Below are positions 1 to 62,400 of a stretch of 64,000 nucleotides of DNA, piece after piece. The position numbers were made by a program, and so were the translations under genes. Source of the stretch: Phaeosaccion multiseriatum (taxonomy: Eukaryota; Protista; Ochrophyta, other classes). The stretch lies in the NCBI GenBank assembly GCA_965112735.1, contig OZ218963.1, positions 62,001 to 126,000 on the forward strand, written 5' to 3'. The notes under the pieces are model-generated. The model saw only the letters and a list, made by a program, of their open reading frames with translations, did not search any database and was not told the origin of the DNA. Position 1 is the stretch's first letter. The number at the start of each line of letters is the position of its first letter.

Positions 1-3000
1 TCTTTGAAGGCCGTCAAGCAGTGCAAAGGCCCCTTGCCCTGCAGGGGAAAGGCCTTGAGGATCTCAGTGGCGTTGACGATGCCCACCCCCTTGACCCCCT
101 CCGTGTAGTCACTGCCCAGCAGCAGGGCCAACGCGCGCATCTCCTCTGTGCCGAGGCCGAGCTCCCTCTCCGCGTCCGCCAAGTGGTATTCCTCCACGCT
201 CTTCCGGTCCTCGAAGATGTTCTGACGACCACACGTACCACACAGCTCACGTAAGTAAGTCAACAAAGGCTACGCGGTAACACCAACACTCACGATAGTC
301 GCAGGCGCACTTCTGGGACACGAGTGCCGCGAAAGATAGAAGGAGCGGTGCCTGCTGTTTCGCCCATACCCATACGCCTGCGCTTACTCTCTCGGCTCAC
401 CTTGTACGCAATCTGCCCCCCGAACACGAACACGTCGCTGTCATCTGTGATGACCCCCTCCACCAGCCCGAGCCTCTCCAGCTCCGCGCACTGAGCCTCT
501 GCCTCCATGGGGGCCACTACACGGACGCATGCACGCACCCACCCACACACACGCATCGAGACAGTCACACAAACGCAGGCGTGAGAAAGTGAGAACAGGT
601 TCGAATGAAAAGAGGATGGCGGGGGGGTGGTAAGAGTACCTTCCTCCTTCACTGGCAGCTGCACAATCAAGCTATATAACATCCCCTGCCACTCACGCCA
701 CCTACTTCCATACCCTACAATTCCCTACCATCCCTTGCCATCCTCTGCCATCTCCTGGCATCCCGTACCGATGTAGGGCACCCCCAGCAGCTCGAGCAGC
801 TCCATGATGTCGTCTCTCATGTCCTCCGTCACGGTTTCCGCGTCGCGAGCCGCCTTCTTGGCTTGTTTCCGCAGCGCCGCCATGCGCCGCCTGTCCGAGT
901 GGGCCCGTGCTGCCTCTTCCTCCGCCGTCTCCTCCGGTGCCGCCTCCACTACCACCACATCGTGGCCCGGGCTGTGGATGGGGGGCCTGACAGGCGGCCT
1001 CACGGTGACCGCATCTTCATTCCGTGGAGGAGGGGCGGGGGGAGCAGTCCCTTGCTGGCCATTGGCGGCGTCTTCCTCCTGCAGAGACATTGCAATGGCG
1101 ATATCCATCTCCTCCTGGTAATCGTCTTGCTCCTCAGTGTCAGGTGCGACCCTTGCTCCCCCTACTGCTGCACCACCAACAGCCGCTGTACTACCAACTT
1201 GTGCTGCTCCCGCTGCTGCTGATGGTGCCTCGCGGTCCTCCTGGAGCGACATTGCAATCGCGAGATCCATCTCCTCCTGGCTGATGTCGTCGTCATCCTC
1301 CTCCTCCTCTTCCTCCTCCTCGCCTTCGGCCTCATTGCTGCCCGCAGCACTTGGTGGTACAGCAACTGCCGCCTCCTCGGACGCCGATACAGCCGTTGGT
1401 GGCACAGCAGCAGGAGCCCCTCCGCCTCCCTCGCCCTCTTGCGAAGAAGGCAATGGCCCTGCTCCTGTCACCACGGAGACCGACTGATGGACAAGTTTGT
1501 GGCCGCCCCCCCCCTTCCCCTCCCTGTCTTCTTTCGACGGAGATTGGCCCTCTTTCAGCTCTTCTTCCTCTCCTTCTTCCTGCTGTTGCGCACCTGTATT
1601 CACATCTAAGGAATGATGCCCACTCCCCGCCTTTTCTAACCCCTCCTCCCCCTGGAGGGCCTTGTCCTTGCCGATACGACTTTTATCTCCTTCCCTACTT
1701 GCTGCTCCTGCTCGATGTCTGGCGTCAGCCCCGCCCTCCCAGCCCTCGGCGTCTCCGCCCTTTCGTACTACGTCCCCTTTTCCAACCTTGAGGCCCGTCC
1801 CGTCCCCACCCACCGCATTGGTATTAACACCCCCTACTTGTGCTCCCTGCGCAGACCCACTCGATGCTGCTGGCCCCTGCTCTTTCCCTCCTCCTCCTTC
1901 TCCCACGTCGCCCCCCTTCCGCTGTTCGTATCTTACATCATCCTCCTGTACACCCCCCCCGCCGTCACCACTCTCCACTTTCTCCGTCCCAGCATCGCGC
2001 TCCTCTGCCTTCGCCTTCGGCGACACTGCCACGGCTGCTGCTGCTGCTGCTGCTGCTGCTGCTGCTGCTGCTGCTGCTGCTGCTGCTGCTGCTGCTGCTG
2101 CTGCTGCTGCTGCTGCTGCTGCTGCTGCTGCTGCTGGATCACCAACGGCCCCTGGTGGTCTCGCTCTTGTTTGCACACCTTCTTCTTTCGCTGAATCAGC
2201 AGGGGGCTGGTCCCCACCAGCATAATCCCCTCCTCCATCACTCTCCTCCTCCTCTTCTTCGCCTTCCTCTTCCCCTGTTCCACCACTCTCCCCCTCATCA
2301 TCCTCCTCCTCCCCCTCCCCTTCGCCCCGCCCCAGCAGGCTCGAGTACAAACTCTGCGTGTTGCTCGCGGCGGGCGCAGAGGGGGCCAGGAAGCGGACCC
2401 TCTGATCAGATGGCCGCCCGCGGAGCTCCGGGCTGTCCCTGCCGCCTCCGCCCTGCGAGTGAGCGGAGGAGGCCGCCGAGGCTGCTGAGCGAGCCCTGTC
2501 CCTCCCCGTGCTGATGTCGTGGTCCCTGAGGGCTCTCTTGACGGCCCTTCCCGCCCAGTCCGCCATCTGTGACGCGGTGTGGATGGCTCCCTCGAACACC
2601 ACGCTGTGGCTGGAAGGATCCGGCCCTTCGTCCTCATCTTCCTCGTCGAGTTGGTCATCCGCACCACCGTCGTCGTCGCCATAGTAGTTACCGTCGTTAT
2701 CCTCCTCCTTCCCGCGAGTTGCTGGCACACTCGATCCATTGAGGAGGGCGAGAAGAGAAGGATTGAGCTTGGAGAAGTCCACCGCATCCCTGGATAGCTC
2801 GATGCCACCCCTACCTCTCTGTTGGGATATACCACCAGCTGCTGCACCCCCGTGAGACGCGCCTCCCCGTCCCTCCTGCCCCGGCCTGCCCTGCCTGCCC
2901 CCCCATCCACTGCCATCCCTGTCCTCCTCCTCCTGGAGCCTTCGAGCCAAAACAGCGTCCGCCTCAAGCCGCCCCGCTGCACTGCTCTCTCCTGCCTCGT

Positions 3001-59426: not shown

Positions 59427-62400
59427 TCAGCCGCTGTAGCCCACGTAAGTGGGTGTGTATGCAGGGGGGCCGCCTCCCACGTTCATGGTATCTGCGCCCC
59501 CCTCGCCCTGTGCCCCTGCCCCTGCCCCCCCCTGTACCTCCACAGTCCCGAACAGCGGCGGAGGGCTTGCCCACACGTTCTCGAACGAAAAGCCCGAGGT
59601 CACCCCCTGTGATGTGTTGCCCCCTCCGCCGCCGAAGTTGCTGGGTGCGAAGGTCCCCGCCCCCCCCCCTCCCGCCCCCCCGCCCGTCGCCTCCCCGTAG
59701 CTTGGGAGCGCATCGTCCTGCACGGCCGCCCCTCCTGCGTGCGCGGGGTACAGTTTCCCATCGTCGCCCATACCGATTGGCTGCTCCATGCCCTGCGGCT
59801 GTTGGTTCACCACCACGCCCTGTTGGATTTGCCCCAGCGGCACCACACCGAGGGGTTGCTGCCCTTGTGGCTGCTGCGCATATGCCTGCTGCTGCGCGTT
59901 GACAAAGTTGGTGCTGAAAGCCTCGGGTAGAGAGGCGCAATCCACGGGCTGATGCAGCGTCTTCTTGGTGTGGAAGCAGCCGAAGATCCCATCGGGGATG
60001 ACGAGCGAAACTGCCACCACATAGCTCCACACCAAGGGGTCCGCCTGCTTCTCCTTGCCGCCCATGGCAGCGAGCCTTGCCGCGGCCTCCAACTTGGCTC
60101 TCTCTCGGCCCTCCTTGTCTGCCCAGTACATGGCTAGCATATGTGGGCTGGGCTCGCCGAAGCCCTAGAAGGAGGGAGGACCCGGGGGCATCATGAACAC
60201 GGGCTCTTGTCCATCAAACACGGCCTGGGGGAGGTGTCAGGACAGGAGGAGTCAGGACAGTGGATGGGTTTGGGTAAAGAGGGTGTGACGACAGAGGGTG
60301 TCAGGACCGGTTGTTGCCTGGCGAACACGGCCTGGGGAGTGGTGAGTGAGTGAGAGAGTGAGTGAGAAGGTAAGTGAGTGAGTGAGTGAGTGAGTGAGTG
60401 AGTGAGTGAGTGAGAGAGTTTGTGAGTAGTAAGTGAATGGGTGAATCATTGAGTGAGTGGGGGAGAGAGTGAGAGAGTGAGGGAGTAAGTGAGTACTAAG
60501 TGAGTGAGTGGCAGAGAAACATTCGGTTTTTGATCTTCCGGCATATCGACCTAGGTGAGAGCTCCATTAAACTGCAACTTCAACTCACCGCCGCCTCCCC
60601 ATCCATGCCTCCGCCGAGGGAGATCGCCCTCTTTGCGAGGATGACGGAATTGCCACGCGAGTGCATGCCGCTGTTGGTTTGGAGGCTGATGGTGCGGATT
60701 AAGCTGAACCCCATCTATTGATCAACGAGGGGGTGAGATGTAAGAGAGAGAGGGAGAGAGGGAGGCGGAGAGAGAGAGACAGATGGAGAGACCGAGATGA
60801 GAGTCTGAGAGGGAGAGAGATGAGGACATGGAGAGTCGGAGAGAGAGAGAGAGAGAGACAGGCCTCGTGCCCATTGGAATGGTCGTGGGCCCCGCGAGGA
60901 GAAAGCCAAAGTGATGCTCGTCGCTTCTCCTCCCCTGCGCAACAAGCACACGCACGCACACACACACCGCCCTCCAGTGCCATCTTCTCCCCCTGAGTCC
61001 CTCCTCCTCGTGCCCCCCCCCCCATCCACCGCCATCTGTTGACCTACCGTGGCCCCCTGCGCCAAGTCCTCAGGGATGAGGGTCCTCATTGCGCCCTTCT
61101 GCATGAACACCCCTTCGTTGGGCATGTACCTGGGTAGGCATACATGTCAATGAATAGAATCAGTAAGTCAGTGACTAGGGAGGTTCGTGGGCATCGAGAT
61201 ATAAGATGCGATACCCATTCAAGGGAAGGTGGCACAAAACGTCTAGAGGTAGTGAGTTGTTTGAAGTGCATGAATGATGAGCCTCGAGCTAGGTAGGCAG
61301 GCAGGCAGGTAGGTAGGTAGGTAGATAGGTACGTAAGCTTTTTGGTTGCGACACGTTCGTACCCGGATTTGAGCAGCGACATACTGAAGCTCACTTCTCC
61401 TCTTGTTACGCACGGGCAGGGCATGGAGCAGCAGCAGAAGATCAGGCAAGCGGGCACACGCTGCTTCAGCTGTTGGTGATACAGGCGGATAAGGCAGGGA
61501 CGGGCGAGTGAGAGGCGATAATAACATGCCTGTTCGGCTGTGCAGTCACTCACGCGCTCAGCAGGAAGCGTGTCATAAGTCGTCACGATTTAGCGAAGCT
61601 CTGCTCTGCTGTCGTCTTGGCCAGGCTCAGGCTCAGGCTCTCACAGATGATGCTGCAGCCAGGAGCAGGGCAGCACCTCACAGCCCAGGCACTTCAAAGC
61701 GCCCTCTCTCTGTCGTTCTCTGTCGCTCTGTATTTCTCTCTCTCTGTCTCTCCCTCCCTCTCTATGTATCGCTCTCCCTGCCCCTCTCTCTCTATGTCGC
61801 TCTCTCTCTCCGCCCCTCTCTGCACATCACTCTCACTTTCTCTCCCCCCCTCTCTATACATAGCTCTCTCTCTCTCTCCATCTCTCTCTATACATAGCTC
61901 TCTCTATATGTCGCCCCCCCTCTCTCTCTTCCTGACATGGCAATGTACTCACTCACCGTAAACGTCTTCTGCGCGATGGGCGGGGGGATGGGCAAGGAGG
62001 GCGAGGGCTGCAGCACGGTGAAGTACGCACGCGTGGAAGGGTTCTTCTTCCATGCTGCGGGGGATGGCAGTAGACGGGGGAAGGGGCGGCGGTTTCCGAG
62101 TAGAGGAGGGGGAGGGGGGGGGAGTGGAGAGATGAGACGAGTGAGGAAGAGTAGCACACGCGGCCGCGACACGCGCAAAGGCCTGACACCTGGTATCTGA
62201 CACTTCACCTTGACAGAGCCCGACACGGGCATTCACTGGTATCTACCGCTCCCTCGCTTTTACCCTCATACCCCACGCACCCGATCCTCCTCCTCCTTCC
62301 TCCCATTCACCCTCCCCCTCTCCTCTCTCCCGGACAGCACTCCTACTTGTACTCACAGATGTCGATGAAGCTGTAGACGCTGTACCGCACGTAGCCTACT

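Follow-up and report, generated by a model that had tools for sequence, protein, structure and literature searches.

A 64,000-nucleotide stretch of the Phaeosaccion multiseriatum genome (GenBank assembly GCA_965112735.1, contig OZ218963.1, positions 62,001 to 126,000, hereinafter the window, to which all coordinates refer) contains a short word, the 10-mer CCACTGCCAT (read on the two strands as CCACTGCCAT/ATGGCAGTGG) within the 16-mer CCATCCACTGCCATCC, that recurs in the introns and exons of unrelated genes and is oriented relative to transcription and splice sites. The explanation that we favor, at about an even chance of being correct, is that this word is a lineage-specific 10-bp minisatellite seed that would spread at the DNA level and would be sorted by splicing and coding constraints. 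The analysis covers one 64-kb window, in which the sequence-derived gene models are approximate outside four genes.

An exact search of both strands identified 52 occurrences of CCACTGCCAT/ATGGCAGTGG, between positions 2907 and 58851, which agrees well with the original prediction of about 50 copies, each of the positions it named being correct within 1 base. The expectation is 0.33 copies (maximum 3) in dinucleotide-preserving shuffles and, under Markov models trained on the window and counted on both strands, 0.27 at order 1 and 0.6 at order 3. The excess over a 5th-order background, which had been proposed as a check, is present within the window (52 versus 4.6, maximum 9); the order-6 model expects 21 copies because it has largely memorized the word. 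The 52 copies are found at 37 sites, namely 32 singletons and 5 short arrays, and CCACTGCCAT together with its one-base shifts ranks first among the 10-mers of the window by the number of separate sites, above (GA)n, poly-C, (CA)n and (GGA)n. All 30 one-mismatch neighbors of CCACTGCCAT total 45 occurrences versus the 52 exact ones, and 19 of these 45 differ at the third base. When up to 3 mismatches are allowed, the family of the 16-mer CCATCCACTGCCATCC includes 112 copies (1.3 expected; 15 exact) that form 67 clusters and are found in each 4-kb bin of the window, with 44 of the 112 (39%) located in the 9.5-kb fucokinase gene. The claim that the word is usually extended to CATCCACTGCCATCC holds in part: the full 15-mer is carried by 20 of the 52 copies, which is not the majority, whereas 45 carry TCCACTGCCATC and 15 the full CCATCCACTGCCATCC. 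The variants named previously do exist, in 11 (CCGCTGCCATC), 7 (CTGCTGCCATC) and 5 (CCCCTGCCATC) copies.

The repeat unit can be represented as CCATCC-ACTG-CCATCC, that is, 1.6 periods of a 10-bp repeat with two CCATCC half-sites 10 bp apart; on direct reading, the word is not palindromic. The immediate context of the 32 singletons consists of T at -1 (32/32), A at -2 (22/32) and C at -3 (30/32) on one side and C at +1 (29/32) and +2 (24/32) on the other, with general C-richness alone further out. Tandem Repeats Finder (TRF) detects head-to-tail arrays of the 10-bp unit at 17460-17485, 28489-28529 (four perfect units), 29473-29628 (periods 10, 14 and 24) and 30438-30467, as well as arrays of the variant units CCATCCCCTG, CTGCCATCCG and GCTGCCATCT; by copy boundaries, the former arrays span 17464-17489, 28487-28532, 29474-29631 and 30439-30464, and variant-unit arrays are located at 708-764, 19804-19832, 27307-27362 and 40045-40080. 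The same core is present at the 37 exact-word sites with unrelated flanks, as is the case in a minisatellite family. In particular, when the word was masked and 150 nt on each side of the 37 sites were compared by all-against-all BLAST, no shared flank family was detected among them, the only matches being physical overlaps, low-complexity sequence and one paralogous pair (51190/58842). Because the flanks are unrelated, CCATCCACTGCCATCC is not a transposon remnant, and the origin of all copies from a single transposon family, which according to the original prediction would have spoken against it, was not found. This pair is part of a tandem segmental duplication (51170-56510 versus 58822-64000, more than 5.3 kb, 86-95% identity), namely 51190/58842; five copies of the word are common to both segments and thus predate the duplication.

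Mismatches over the 112 copies are distributed non-uniformly across positions (chi-square p about 1e-19), in a profile that can be summarized as CCnTCCnCTGCCnTCC. The A positions 3, 7 and 13 of the 16-mer show 28, 30 and 12 changes, respectively, and the two end positions 21 and 29, compared with 3, 5 and 0 changes at the T positions 4, 9 and 14. The changes at A positions go to G or C, and seldom to T, in both transcriptional orientations. The spectrum is identical in copies that are C-rich and those that are G-rich in the sense strand of the host gene (hereinafter C-sense and G-sense), which implies that the shaping acts on the duplex rather than on one transcript strand and points to an origin of the word at the DNA level. 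All three A's of the 16-mer are preceded by C, and the CpG observed/expected ratio of the window is 0.61; turnover between CpG and CpA may lie behind the A/G part of the mismatches, A-to-C changes being equally frequent. Across the entire window, this CpG depletion (0.61) is accompanied by an excess of CA/TG (1.19/1.23), which suggests cytosine methylation in the gene bodies of this organism. Copies less than 500 nt apart have a mean Hamming distance of 2.4, versus 3.0 for those separated by more than 10 kb (permutation p = 0.02); this closer likeness of neighbors, together with the concentration of copies in the fucokinase gene, fits local copying.

The placement of the copies can be compared with a gene map that is based on Pfam, tblastn with homologs and a codon log-odds score, for which about 1,400 codons with Pfam support served as the training set:

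1-5.4 kb, - strand: XPG-type nuclease, with XPG_N at 4954-5150, long spacer open reading frames (ORFs) and XPG_I in exons 395-517 and 30-224
8.9-13.4 kb, - strand: CAP59/DXD glycosyltransferase
about 14.3-22.8 kb, + strand: ankyrin-repeat gene with many small exons
23.1-32.6 kb, - strand: bifunctional fucokinase / GDP-fucose pyrophosphorylase
about 38-42.9 kb, - strand: His_Phos_2 phosphatase
about 44-50.6 kb, + strand: organellar IF-2
51-56 kb and 59-64 kb, - strand: two paralogous orphan genes

Relative to these genes, the family divides into 56-58 C-sense and 52 G-sense copies. The C-sense copies are located at the 3' ends of introns, and the G-sense copies just after 5' splice sites or in exons. 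Thus, the word is not distributed regardless of context but is strongly oriented by transcription and splice sites. When clusters were classed by the codon score of the sequence 40-130 nt away on either side, with the caveat that the exon calls are crude, 12 C-sense clusters mark a transition from non-coding to coding sequence versus 2 in the opposite direction, and 4 G-sense clusters mark the former transition versus 14 the latter (Fisher p = 0.001; Mann-Whitney p = 0.005 for the downstream-minus-upstream score). In the IF-2 gene, where homology to bacterial IF-2 defines the acceptors 47564/47565, 49050/49051 and 49278/49279, a family member lies 2-25 nt upstream of each. C-sense copies followed by coding-like sequence are also found at 17561, 19817, 21389, 23525, 40020, 54384/62062 and 58556. 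On the donor side, G-sense copies are located at +6 from GTACGG (728-763), +6 from GTCAGG (17464), +12 from GTACTG (29050), +50 from GTAAGT (29850), +17 from GTGAGT (38284) and +10 from GTAAGT (53286, with the paralog 61022). The distance to the first downstream AG was dropped as evidence for acceptors because AG is frequent, and the coding score and homology were used instead; one putative acceptor, 25842, was shown to be false by homology. Among the roles suggested earlier for the word, that of a splicing element is the one with positional support, and its pyrimidine-rich strand is probably one component of the C-rich tract that precedes 3' splice sites. The individual copies and groups of copies, apart from those in fucokinase insertions that are described below, are as follows:

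728-763, + strand: three degenerate G-sense copies, 6 nt past the GTACGG of the XPG intron that follows codons ...ELLGVPYI; XPG_I resumes in exon 395-517
2903-2918, + strand: exact 16-mer, G-sense, in an XPG spacer ORF with weak coding signal, read DGSGW
3354-3369, + strand: exact 16-mer in an XPG spacer ORF, read MAVDG
4337-4562, + strand: three copies (4337, 4428, 4547) in the XPG spacer ORF 4169-5086, read DGSGG, MAVDV and DGSGS; the copy at 4341 has a strong in-frame codon signal on either side
10195-10210, + strand: exact 16-mer, read DGSGW, toward the C-terminus of the glycosyltransferase ORF, in a part that is not conserved; homology stops near residue 650
17458-17582, + strand: 125-nt ankyrin intron, with exon calls from codon-score segmentation alone; two G-rich copies at 17464-17489, 6 nt past GTCAGG, and a degenerate C-rich copy at 17561-17576, 4 nt before CAG
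18191-18835, + strand: seven C-sense copies in ankyrin introns (18191, 18218, 18294, 18390, 18562-18597, 18820), several followed by a CCTGAC branch-like site and YAG
19807-19832, + strand: pair of CCGCTG variants ending 8 nt before CAG; coding-like from 19842
23525-23632, - strand: C-sense copies 23525 (exact), 23598 and 23617, before ...TGCAG and the last fucokinase exon, which has a weak GHMP_kinases_C match (23144-23491)
27519-27586, + strand: three exact 10-mers, G-sense, spaced by 24 and 30 nt, in the terminal part of ORF 27443-28486, either exonic or intronic
27728-28397, + strand: four G-sense copies (27728, 27917, 28042, 28382) in three frames of ORF 27443-28486, coding status uncertain, no Pfam match
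28487-28532, - strand: perfect (CCACTGCCAT)x4 array, C-sense, running directly into AG/GAGGG, an apparent 3' splice site
28713-28748, + strand: three degenerate G-sense copies about 35 nt past the candidate 5' splice site GTGCGT; upstream exon tentative
29029-29065, + strand: two G-sense copies, 12 nt past GTACTG (29076), the 5' splice site with which fucokinase exon D ends
29472-29914, - strand: fucokinase intron starting with GTAAGT and bounded, by homology, by the end of exon C (29915) and the start of exon D (about 29471); G-rich copy 29850-29865 at +50 nt; at the other end, about 11 C-rich units form an array (29474-29631) that abuts AG
30178-30523, - strand: fucokinase intron across which the Pfam and homolog frames shift, with a (GTCAGG)n array at the 5' splice site; C-rich copies 30439-30464, 30399 and 30288, and a G-rich copy 30194-30209 near the 3' end
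31224-31239, + strand: G-sense copy, read EDGSGR, in fucose-pyrophosphorylase exon B, with coding signal on both sides
35003-35148, + strand: two copies, 35003 (1 mismatch) and 35133 (exact), each followed by ...CAG; gene orientation uncertain
40020-40080, - strand: four C-sense copies (CCCCTG variants) ending 12 nt before CAG, next to coding-like 39836-40006
40651-40801, + strand: four degenerate G-sense copies at the end of the His_Phos_2 exon
42552-42567, + strand: G-sense copy, read DGSGW, in ORF 42114-42866
47509-47553, + strand: three C-sense copies in the last 55 nt of IF-2 intron 1 (AG at 47563-47564)
49031-49046, + strand: C-sense copy 2 nt before the CAG of an IF-2 intron; exon from 49051
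49236-49251, + strand: degenerate C-sense copy in the next IF-2 intron, 25 nt upstream of its TAG; exon from 49279
53227-53301, + strand: two G-sense copies, one (53286) 10 nt past GTAAGT; paralogous pair at 60970-61037
54384-54399, - strand: C-sense copy 5 nt before CAG; paralog at 62062-62077
58556-58591, - strand: three C-sense copies ending 4 nt before CAG

The segregation of G-rich and C-rich sequence within introns seems to be a broader feature of the window. The 5' parts of introns contain G/T-rich tandem repeats, such as (GTCAGG)n at 30482-30524, (TG)n and (GTGA)n, the 3' parts contain C-rich repeats, including (TCCC)n, (CCTCC)n, CCACCCATCC and the word itself, and purine-rich repeats are found in exons. 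The sense-strand (GTCAGG/GTCGGG)x7 array at 30482-30524 begins exactly at a fucokinase 5' splice site and offers seven in-register candidate donor sites; the (GTGA)n and (AGTGAGTG)n arrays at 7969-8108 and 17727-18056 also look like an expanded donor consensus. In the IF-2 intron 47356-47564, the G-rich 5' half pairs with the C-rich 3' half (z = -2.4) without the use of the word.

The effect of exonic copies on proteins is apparent in the fucokinase, for which tblastn of fish, protist and bacterial homologs against the window yields single in-frame alignments through 26345-25671. A 21-residue in-frame insertion in the kinase domain, MATGMAVDGERDGDGSRRGGD (25968-26030, + strand), located between the conserved motifs ...ARLDLAGGWSDTPPxxxE and GGxVxNxAV, is absent from three homologs and holds the copies 26005-26020 (exact) and 25977-25992. 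Upstream of it, two further in-frame insertions, of 10 and 12 residues (26121-26201, + strand), correspond to gaps in the homologs P0171 and P0182 and hold one copy each, 26173-26188 (read QMAADG) and 26139-26154 (QDGSGW). Finally, exon D contains an in-frame insertion, about 24 residues long and delineated by alignment to P0202, with copies 29359 and 29326 (29326-29374, + strand), which are read GMAVDG/GMAADE and lie within a 33-bp duplicated unit. Altogether, homolog alignments place six fucokinase copies in in-frame insertions without counterpart in orthologs, and no GT...AG pair is placed so as to splice them out. These insertions of 10, 12, 21 and about 24 residues, missing in fish, bacterial and protist homologs, substantiate the idea that the word imposes peptides on proteins, and the orthologs indeed lack the DGSGW/MAVDG inserts, as far as fucokinase is concerned. 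Between the kinase exon and ORF 27443-28486, in a tentative part of the gene model, there is also a 22-bp tandem repeat, TTACAAGTGTCGTTGTTGGCGG, in about 6 copies (27090-27216).

Other parts of the original prediction on exonic copies have to be revised. Among the three exonic reading frames proposed, MAxDG and DGSGW are confirmed by homology, whereas WQWM is found only in introns (29054, 30198) or in uncertain sequence (28046). The copies 30198, 30290, 30441, 29054, 29854, 28489 and 29490, which had been read as exonic, are all intronic; in particular, the Pfam domain of the stop-free ORF 29928-31481 continues in another frame, which makes 30198-30460 intronic. The word is free of stop codons in all six frames and therefore produces misleading long ORFs. 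Repeats of this kind, lacking stops, will be misassigned to exons or introns by gene-finding programs, as the earlier exon assignments illustrate. The general claim that nucleotide-level processes generate or maintain the word is upheld by its presence in introns and exons alike, the unrelated flanks, the strand-independent mismatch spectrum and the in-frame insertions.

Under the minisatellite explanation, the seed CCATCC-ACTG-CCATCC would multiply in place as its half-sites slip or exchange unequally, giving rise to arrays with periods of 10, 14, 24 and 33, and might reach new sites by short-patch copying without flanking sequence. Whether a copy survives, and in which orientation, would then depend on selection at the transcript level. 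The pyrimidine-rich strand would be kept in the C-rich tract upstream of 3' splice sites, probably as a part of that tract. The G-rich strand would be kept just downstream of 5' splice sites and, if the number of added bases is divisible by three, also in exons, as Gly/Asp/Ser/Trp-rich loop or linker insertions. Two orientations in one intron could pair and draw the splice sites together as an occasional consequence. Several points weigh against this scenario. The mechanism of spread to unlinked loci is conjectural, and 16 exact bases are not repeatably made by point mutation. The near-invariance of the T positions next to the free variation of the A positions could mean sequence-specific recognition. 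A pure filter provides no obvious reason for C-rich copies to avoid the 5' ends of introns. The sorting is not absolute either, given that the C-sense copy 25882 is exonic by homology and the G-sense copy 30194 is just 9-15 nt upstream of an acceptor. Moreover, the scenario draws on the genomic sequence of one 64-kb window, and beyond four genes the exon calls come from a crude codon log-odds score (about 1,400 training codons).

Several alternative explanations have been considered. The word might be a structural element of introns, with G-rich copies after the donor pairing with C-rich copies before the acceptor and thus enforcing the pairing of splice sites, and with exonic copies as spill-over. 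Complementary arms are present at opposite boundaries of 4-5 introns, at least four of which have both arms in the right places (17458-17582; 29914-29472; 29076-28915; about 28781-28487), and a precedent exists in teleosts (PMC4691745). Furthermore, two introns fold far beyond shuffled sequences with the arms paired end to end: the ankyrin intron 17458-17582, which forms one hairpin from nt 5 to nt 122 (minimum free energy -60.3 kcal/mol, z = -4.6) and is mirtron-like in shape, and the fucokinase intron ending at 28487, in which the G-rich copies 28713-28748 pair with the C-rich array (z = -6.2). Two other introns show arm-to-arm pairing without unusual stability. However, 3 of 5 word-bearing introns fold no better than shuffles. 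The IF-2 introns have a 3' copy without a 5' partner, the XPG and 53.3-kb introns have 5' copies only, and others are likewise single-armed. A systematic RNAduplex test reveals no partner preference, with the stronger partner of C-sense copies located upstream in 16 of 29 cases (p = 0.86) and no downstream preference of G-sense copies, and pairing does not require an identical word in every intron. Because the partner test was negative and many introns are single-armed, bridging was demoted: it is an occasional consequence rather than the rule, and enforced pairing is an unlikely explanation of the word as a whole. Long near-perfect intronic hairpins are also what would be expected if hairpins formed by the two orientations were diced into small RNAs matching many transcripts, and one study attributes most Chlamydomonas microRNAs to DCL3 cleavage of introns and untranslated regions (PMC4817775). 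Most copies of the word, however, are single and unpaired, and their distribution is explained without small RNAs, so that this possibility appears slight. With respect to other RNA structures, GGATGGCAGTGGATGG has four GG doublets, yet ViennaRNA with quadruplex energies predicts no RNA G-quadruplex, and Rfam gives no match anywhere in the window at gathering thresholds.

Alternatively, the word could be recognized as duplex DNA by a sequence-specific binding protein, such as a multi-zinc-finger factor acting in recombination or on chromatin, that would locally promote breaks and unequal exchange and thus seed minisatellites, as has been proposed for hotspot motifs and minisatellite cores. The position-specific mismatches (CCnTCCnCTGCCnTCC; 0-5 changes at T versus 12-30 at A positions), alike in both orientations, the spacing of the half-sites by one helical turn, and the arrays and micro-expansions at many sites are compatible with such a factor. 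The factor is, however, hypothetical, part of the pattern may reflect CpG/CpA turnover, some of the A-to-C cases may be look-alikes from CCCT-type microsatellites, and the sorting by orientation would still require a separate cause at the transcript level; we consider this explanation doubtful. A transposable element appears much less plausible, be it a miniature inverted-repeat transposable element or an introner-like element with the word as inverted ends, or a set of excision footprints. Single introns do contain both orientations, one 125-nt intron is a near-perfect hairpin, and the core CACTG resembles the termini of some DNA transposons. Nevertheless, the masked 150-nt flanks reveal no family, the left and right CCATC halves lack the co-variation expected of target-site duplications, and period-10 tandem arrays and in-frame exonic copies are a poor fit, which makes this origin highly improbable. 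The reading of CCATC-CACTG-CCATC as an excision footprint was ruled out, given that the two halves vary independently. An interstitial telomere or telomerase healing, for which the 1.5-unit copy would be template-like, was set aside as unlikely: there is no terminal array and no other sign of it. Finally, a compositional artefact, in which the word would be a chance product of C-rich or G-rich low-complexity sequence, might be envisaged in a window that is 60% GC and laden with simple repeats (253 TRF rows) and in which the flanks of the word are C-rich. The word itself, however, is not of low complexity, its exact copies outnumber the sum of all one-mismatch neighbors, and the order-5 model derived from the same window yields just 4.6 copies; the chance of an artefact is close to nil.

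A more far-reaching interpretation, rather unlikely but a genuine candidate, is that the 16-mer is a cis-element with a dedicated DNA or RNA reader, spread genome-wide by templated short-patch insertion. A DNA factor might seed and homogenize the repeat, or an RNA system might exist in which the two orientations mark and pair the ends of introns. If this is the case, such an element would be a eukaryotic counterpart of the bacterial 'genome words', coupled to splicing and not previously described, that writes 5-20 residues into conserved proteins. If the pattern holds genome-wide, it would provide a system for studying how very short repeats colonize unlinked loci without a transposon, how intron ends are defined in GC-rich genomes without U-rich tracts, with a C-rich word at the position of the polypyrimidine tract, and how repeat expansion writes loops into conserved enzymes, as exemplified by the four separate in-frame insertions in one fucokinase.

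Apart from the word, the window contains many other repeats. Eleven perfect 15-bp units, GTCCTGACACTCACT in the sense of the - strand, in which the branch-point-like CCTGAC is repeated, are found at 9526-9693 in an apparent glycosyltransferase intron. The 10-mer GTCCTGACAC occurs 44 times in the window. A 24-bp satellite, CTCTCTCTGCCTGCCCATACGCCT, is present in 30 copies with 92% identity in the phosphatase gene region (38540-39258), and 45 units of (AGGGAGGGA)n occupy a fucokinase intron (24437-24830). Long simple repeats in or beside genes include (GAG)n of about 163 units (35299-35789) and (GT)86 (22211-22382). In the glycosyltransferase (9805-13398, - strand), a DXD sugar-binding region is joined to a CAP59-type mannosyltransferase domain. 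Identity to this protein reaches about 43% at most in two very large collections, and its closest named homologs are from green algae (Cymbomonas, Edaphochlamys). Over the protein searches with genes of the window, the best matches had 37-43% identity in overall terms, and 64% over one short conserved stretch of the fucokinase; a PDB search with the pyrophosphorylase exon gave no match. An orphan ORF from the paralogous pair has no homolog in a protein search, and ORFs 51782-52594 and 59430-60164 have no Pfam match.

Searches for the same word elsewhere were negative within their scope. A metagenome scan for two tandem units returned 24 loci, all of them unrelated local arrays (39-70% GC) with no dispersed copies; one of these, L014, is a 73-bp satellite. 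The word is also absent from a TARA scaffold (L001) that, like the contig of a compact picoeukaryote (L106), does not come from a relative. In the literature searched by sequence, the 10-mers match only primers and miR-34-type sequences, and the 14-mer and the 20-mer are unmatched.

The word can be compared with several known systems. Jeffreys-type vertebrate minisatellites share, at unlinked loci, a G-rich core of about 10-16 bp that occurs in tandem arrays and for which a role in signaling recombination has been suggested. The likeness consists in many unlinked loci with one short G-rich/C-rich core forming arrays; here, in contrast, most sites are single seeds or arrays of 2-11 units, located within genes at a density of about one per 600 bp, with an orientation that follows transcription. 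HIP1 and bacterial uptake sequences, to which the word had been likened in the original prediction, are similarly short, greatly over-represented and present inside genes in several frames, and hence shaped at the nucleotide level. However, HIP1 is palindromic, and both HIP1 and uptake sequences are fairly evenly spread, without ties to introns, gene structure or tandem expansion, whereas the word is non-palindromic, uneven (44 of 112 copies, or 39%, in one gene), array-forming and sorted by splice sites, so that the analogy fails. Introners share sequence over their whole length; introner-like elements resemble the present case in that a repeat is tied to many introns, some of them strongly structured, but here only 16 nt are shared.

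In teleosts, (AC)m-(GT)n structured introns carry complementary repeats at opposite intron ends, which are able to bridge the intron as a helix (Lin et al., 2016, PMC4691745). Four or five introns in the window share this layout with predicted end-to-end pairing. Unlike the teleost repeats, the word is a 10-mer rather than a dinucleotide, the co-occurrence of the two arms is not supported statistically, there are exonic copies as well, and the layout is known here only from the genomic sequence. In volvocine green algae, introns and coding sequences have the highest density of tandem repeats, which are concentrated where introns and exons meet (Zhao et al., 2014, PMC3887541; bioRxiv 10.1101/2022.06.16.496473 for Chlamydomonas v6); a single dispersed word is described in neither of these two papers. 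As in these GC-rich genomes, the window has repeat units at intron ends, with (GTCAGG)n and (GTGA)n at the 5' side and (TCCC)n, (CCTCC)n and the word at the 3' side. The volvocine repeats, however, are microsatellite classes, whereas here one 16-nt word, mostly in single 1.6-unit copies, occupies dozens of unrelated positions, follows a sorting by orientation and is placed in frame inside conserved enzymes.

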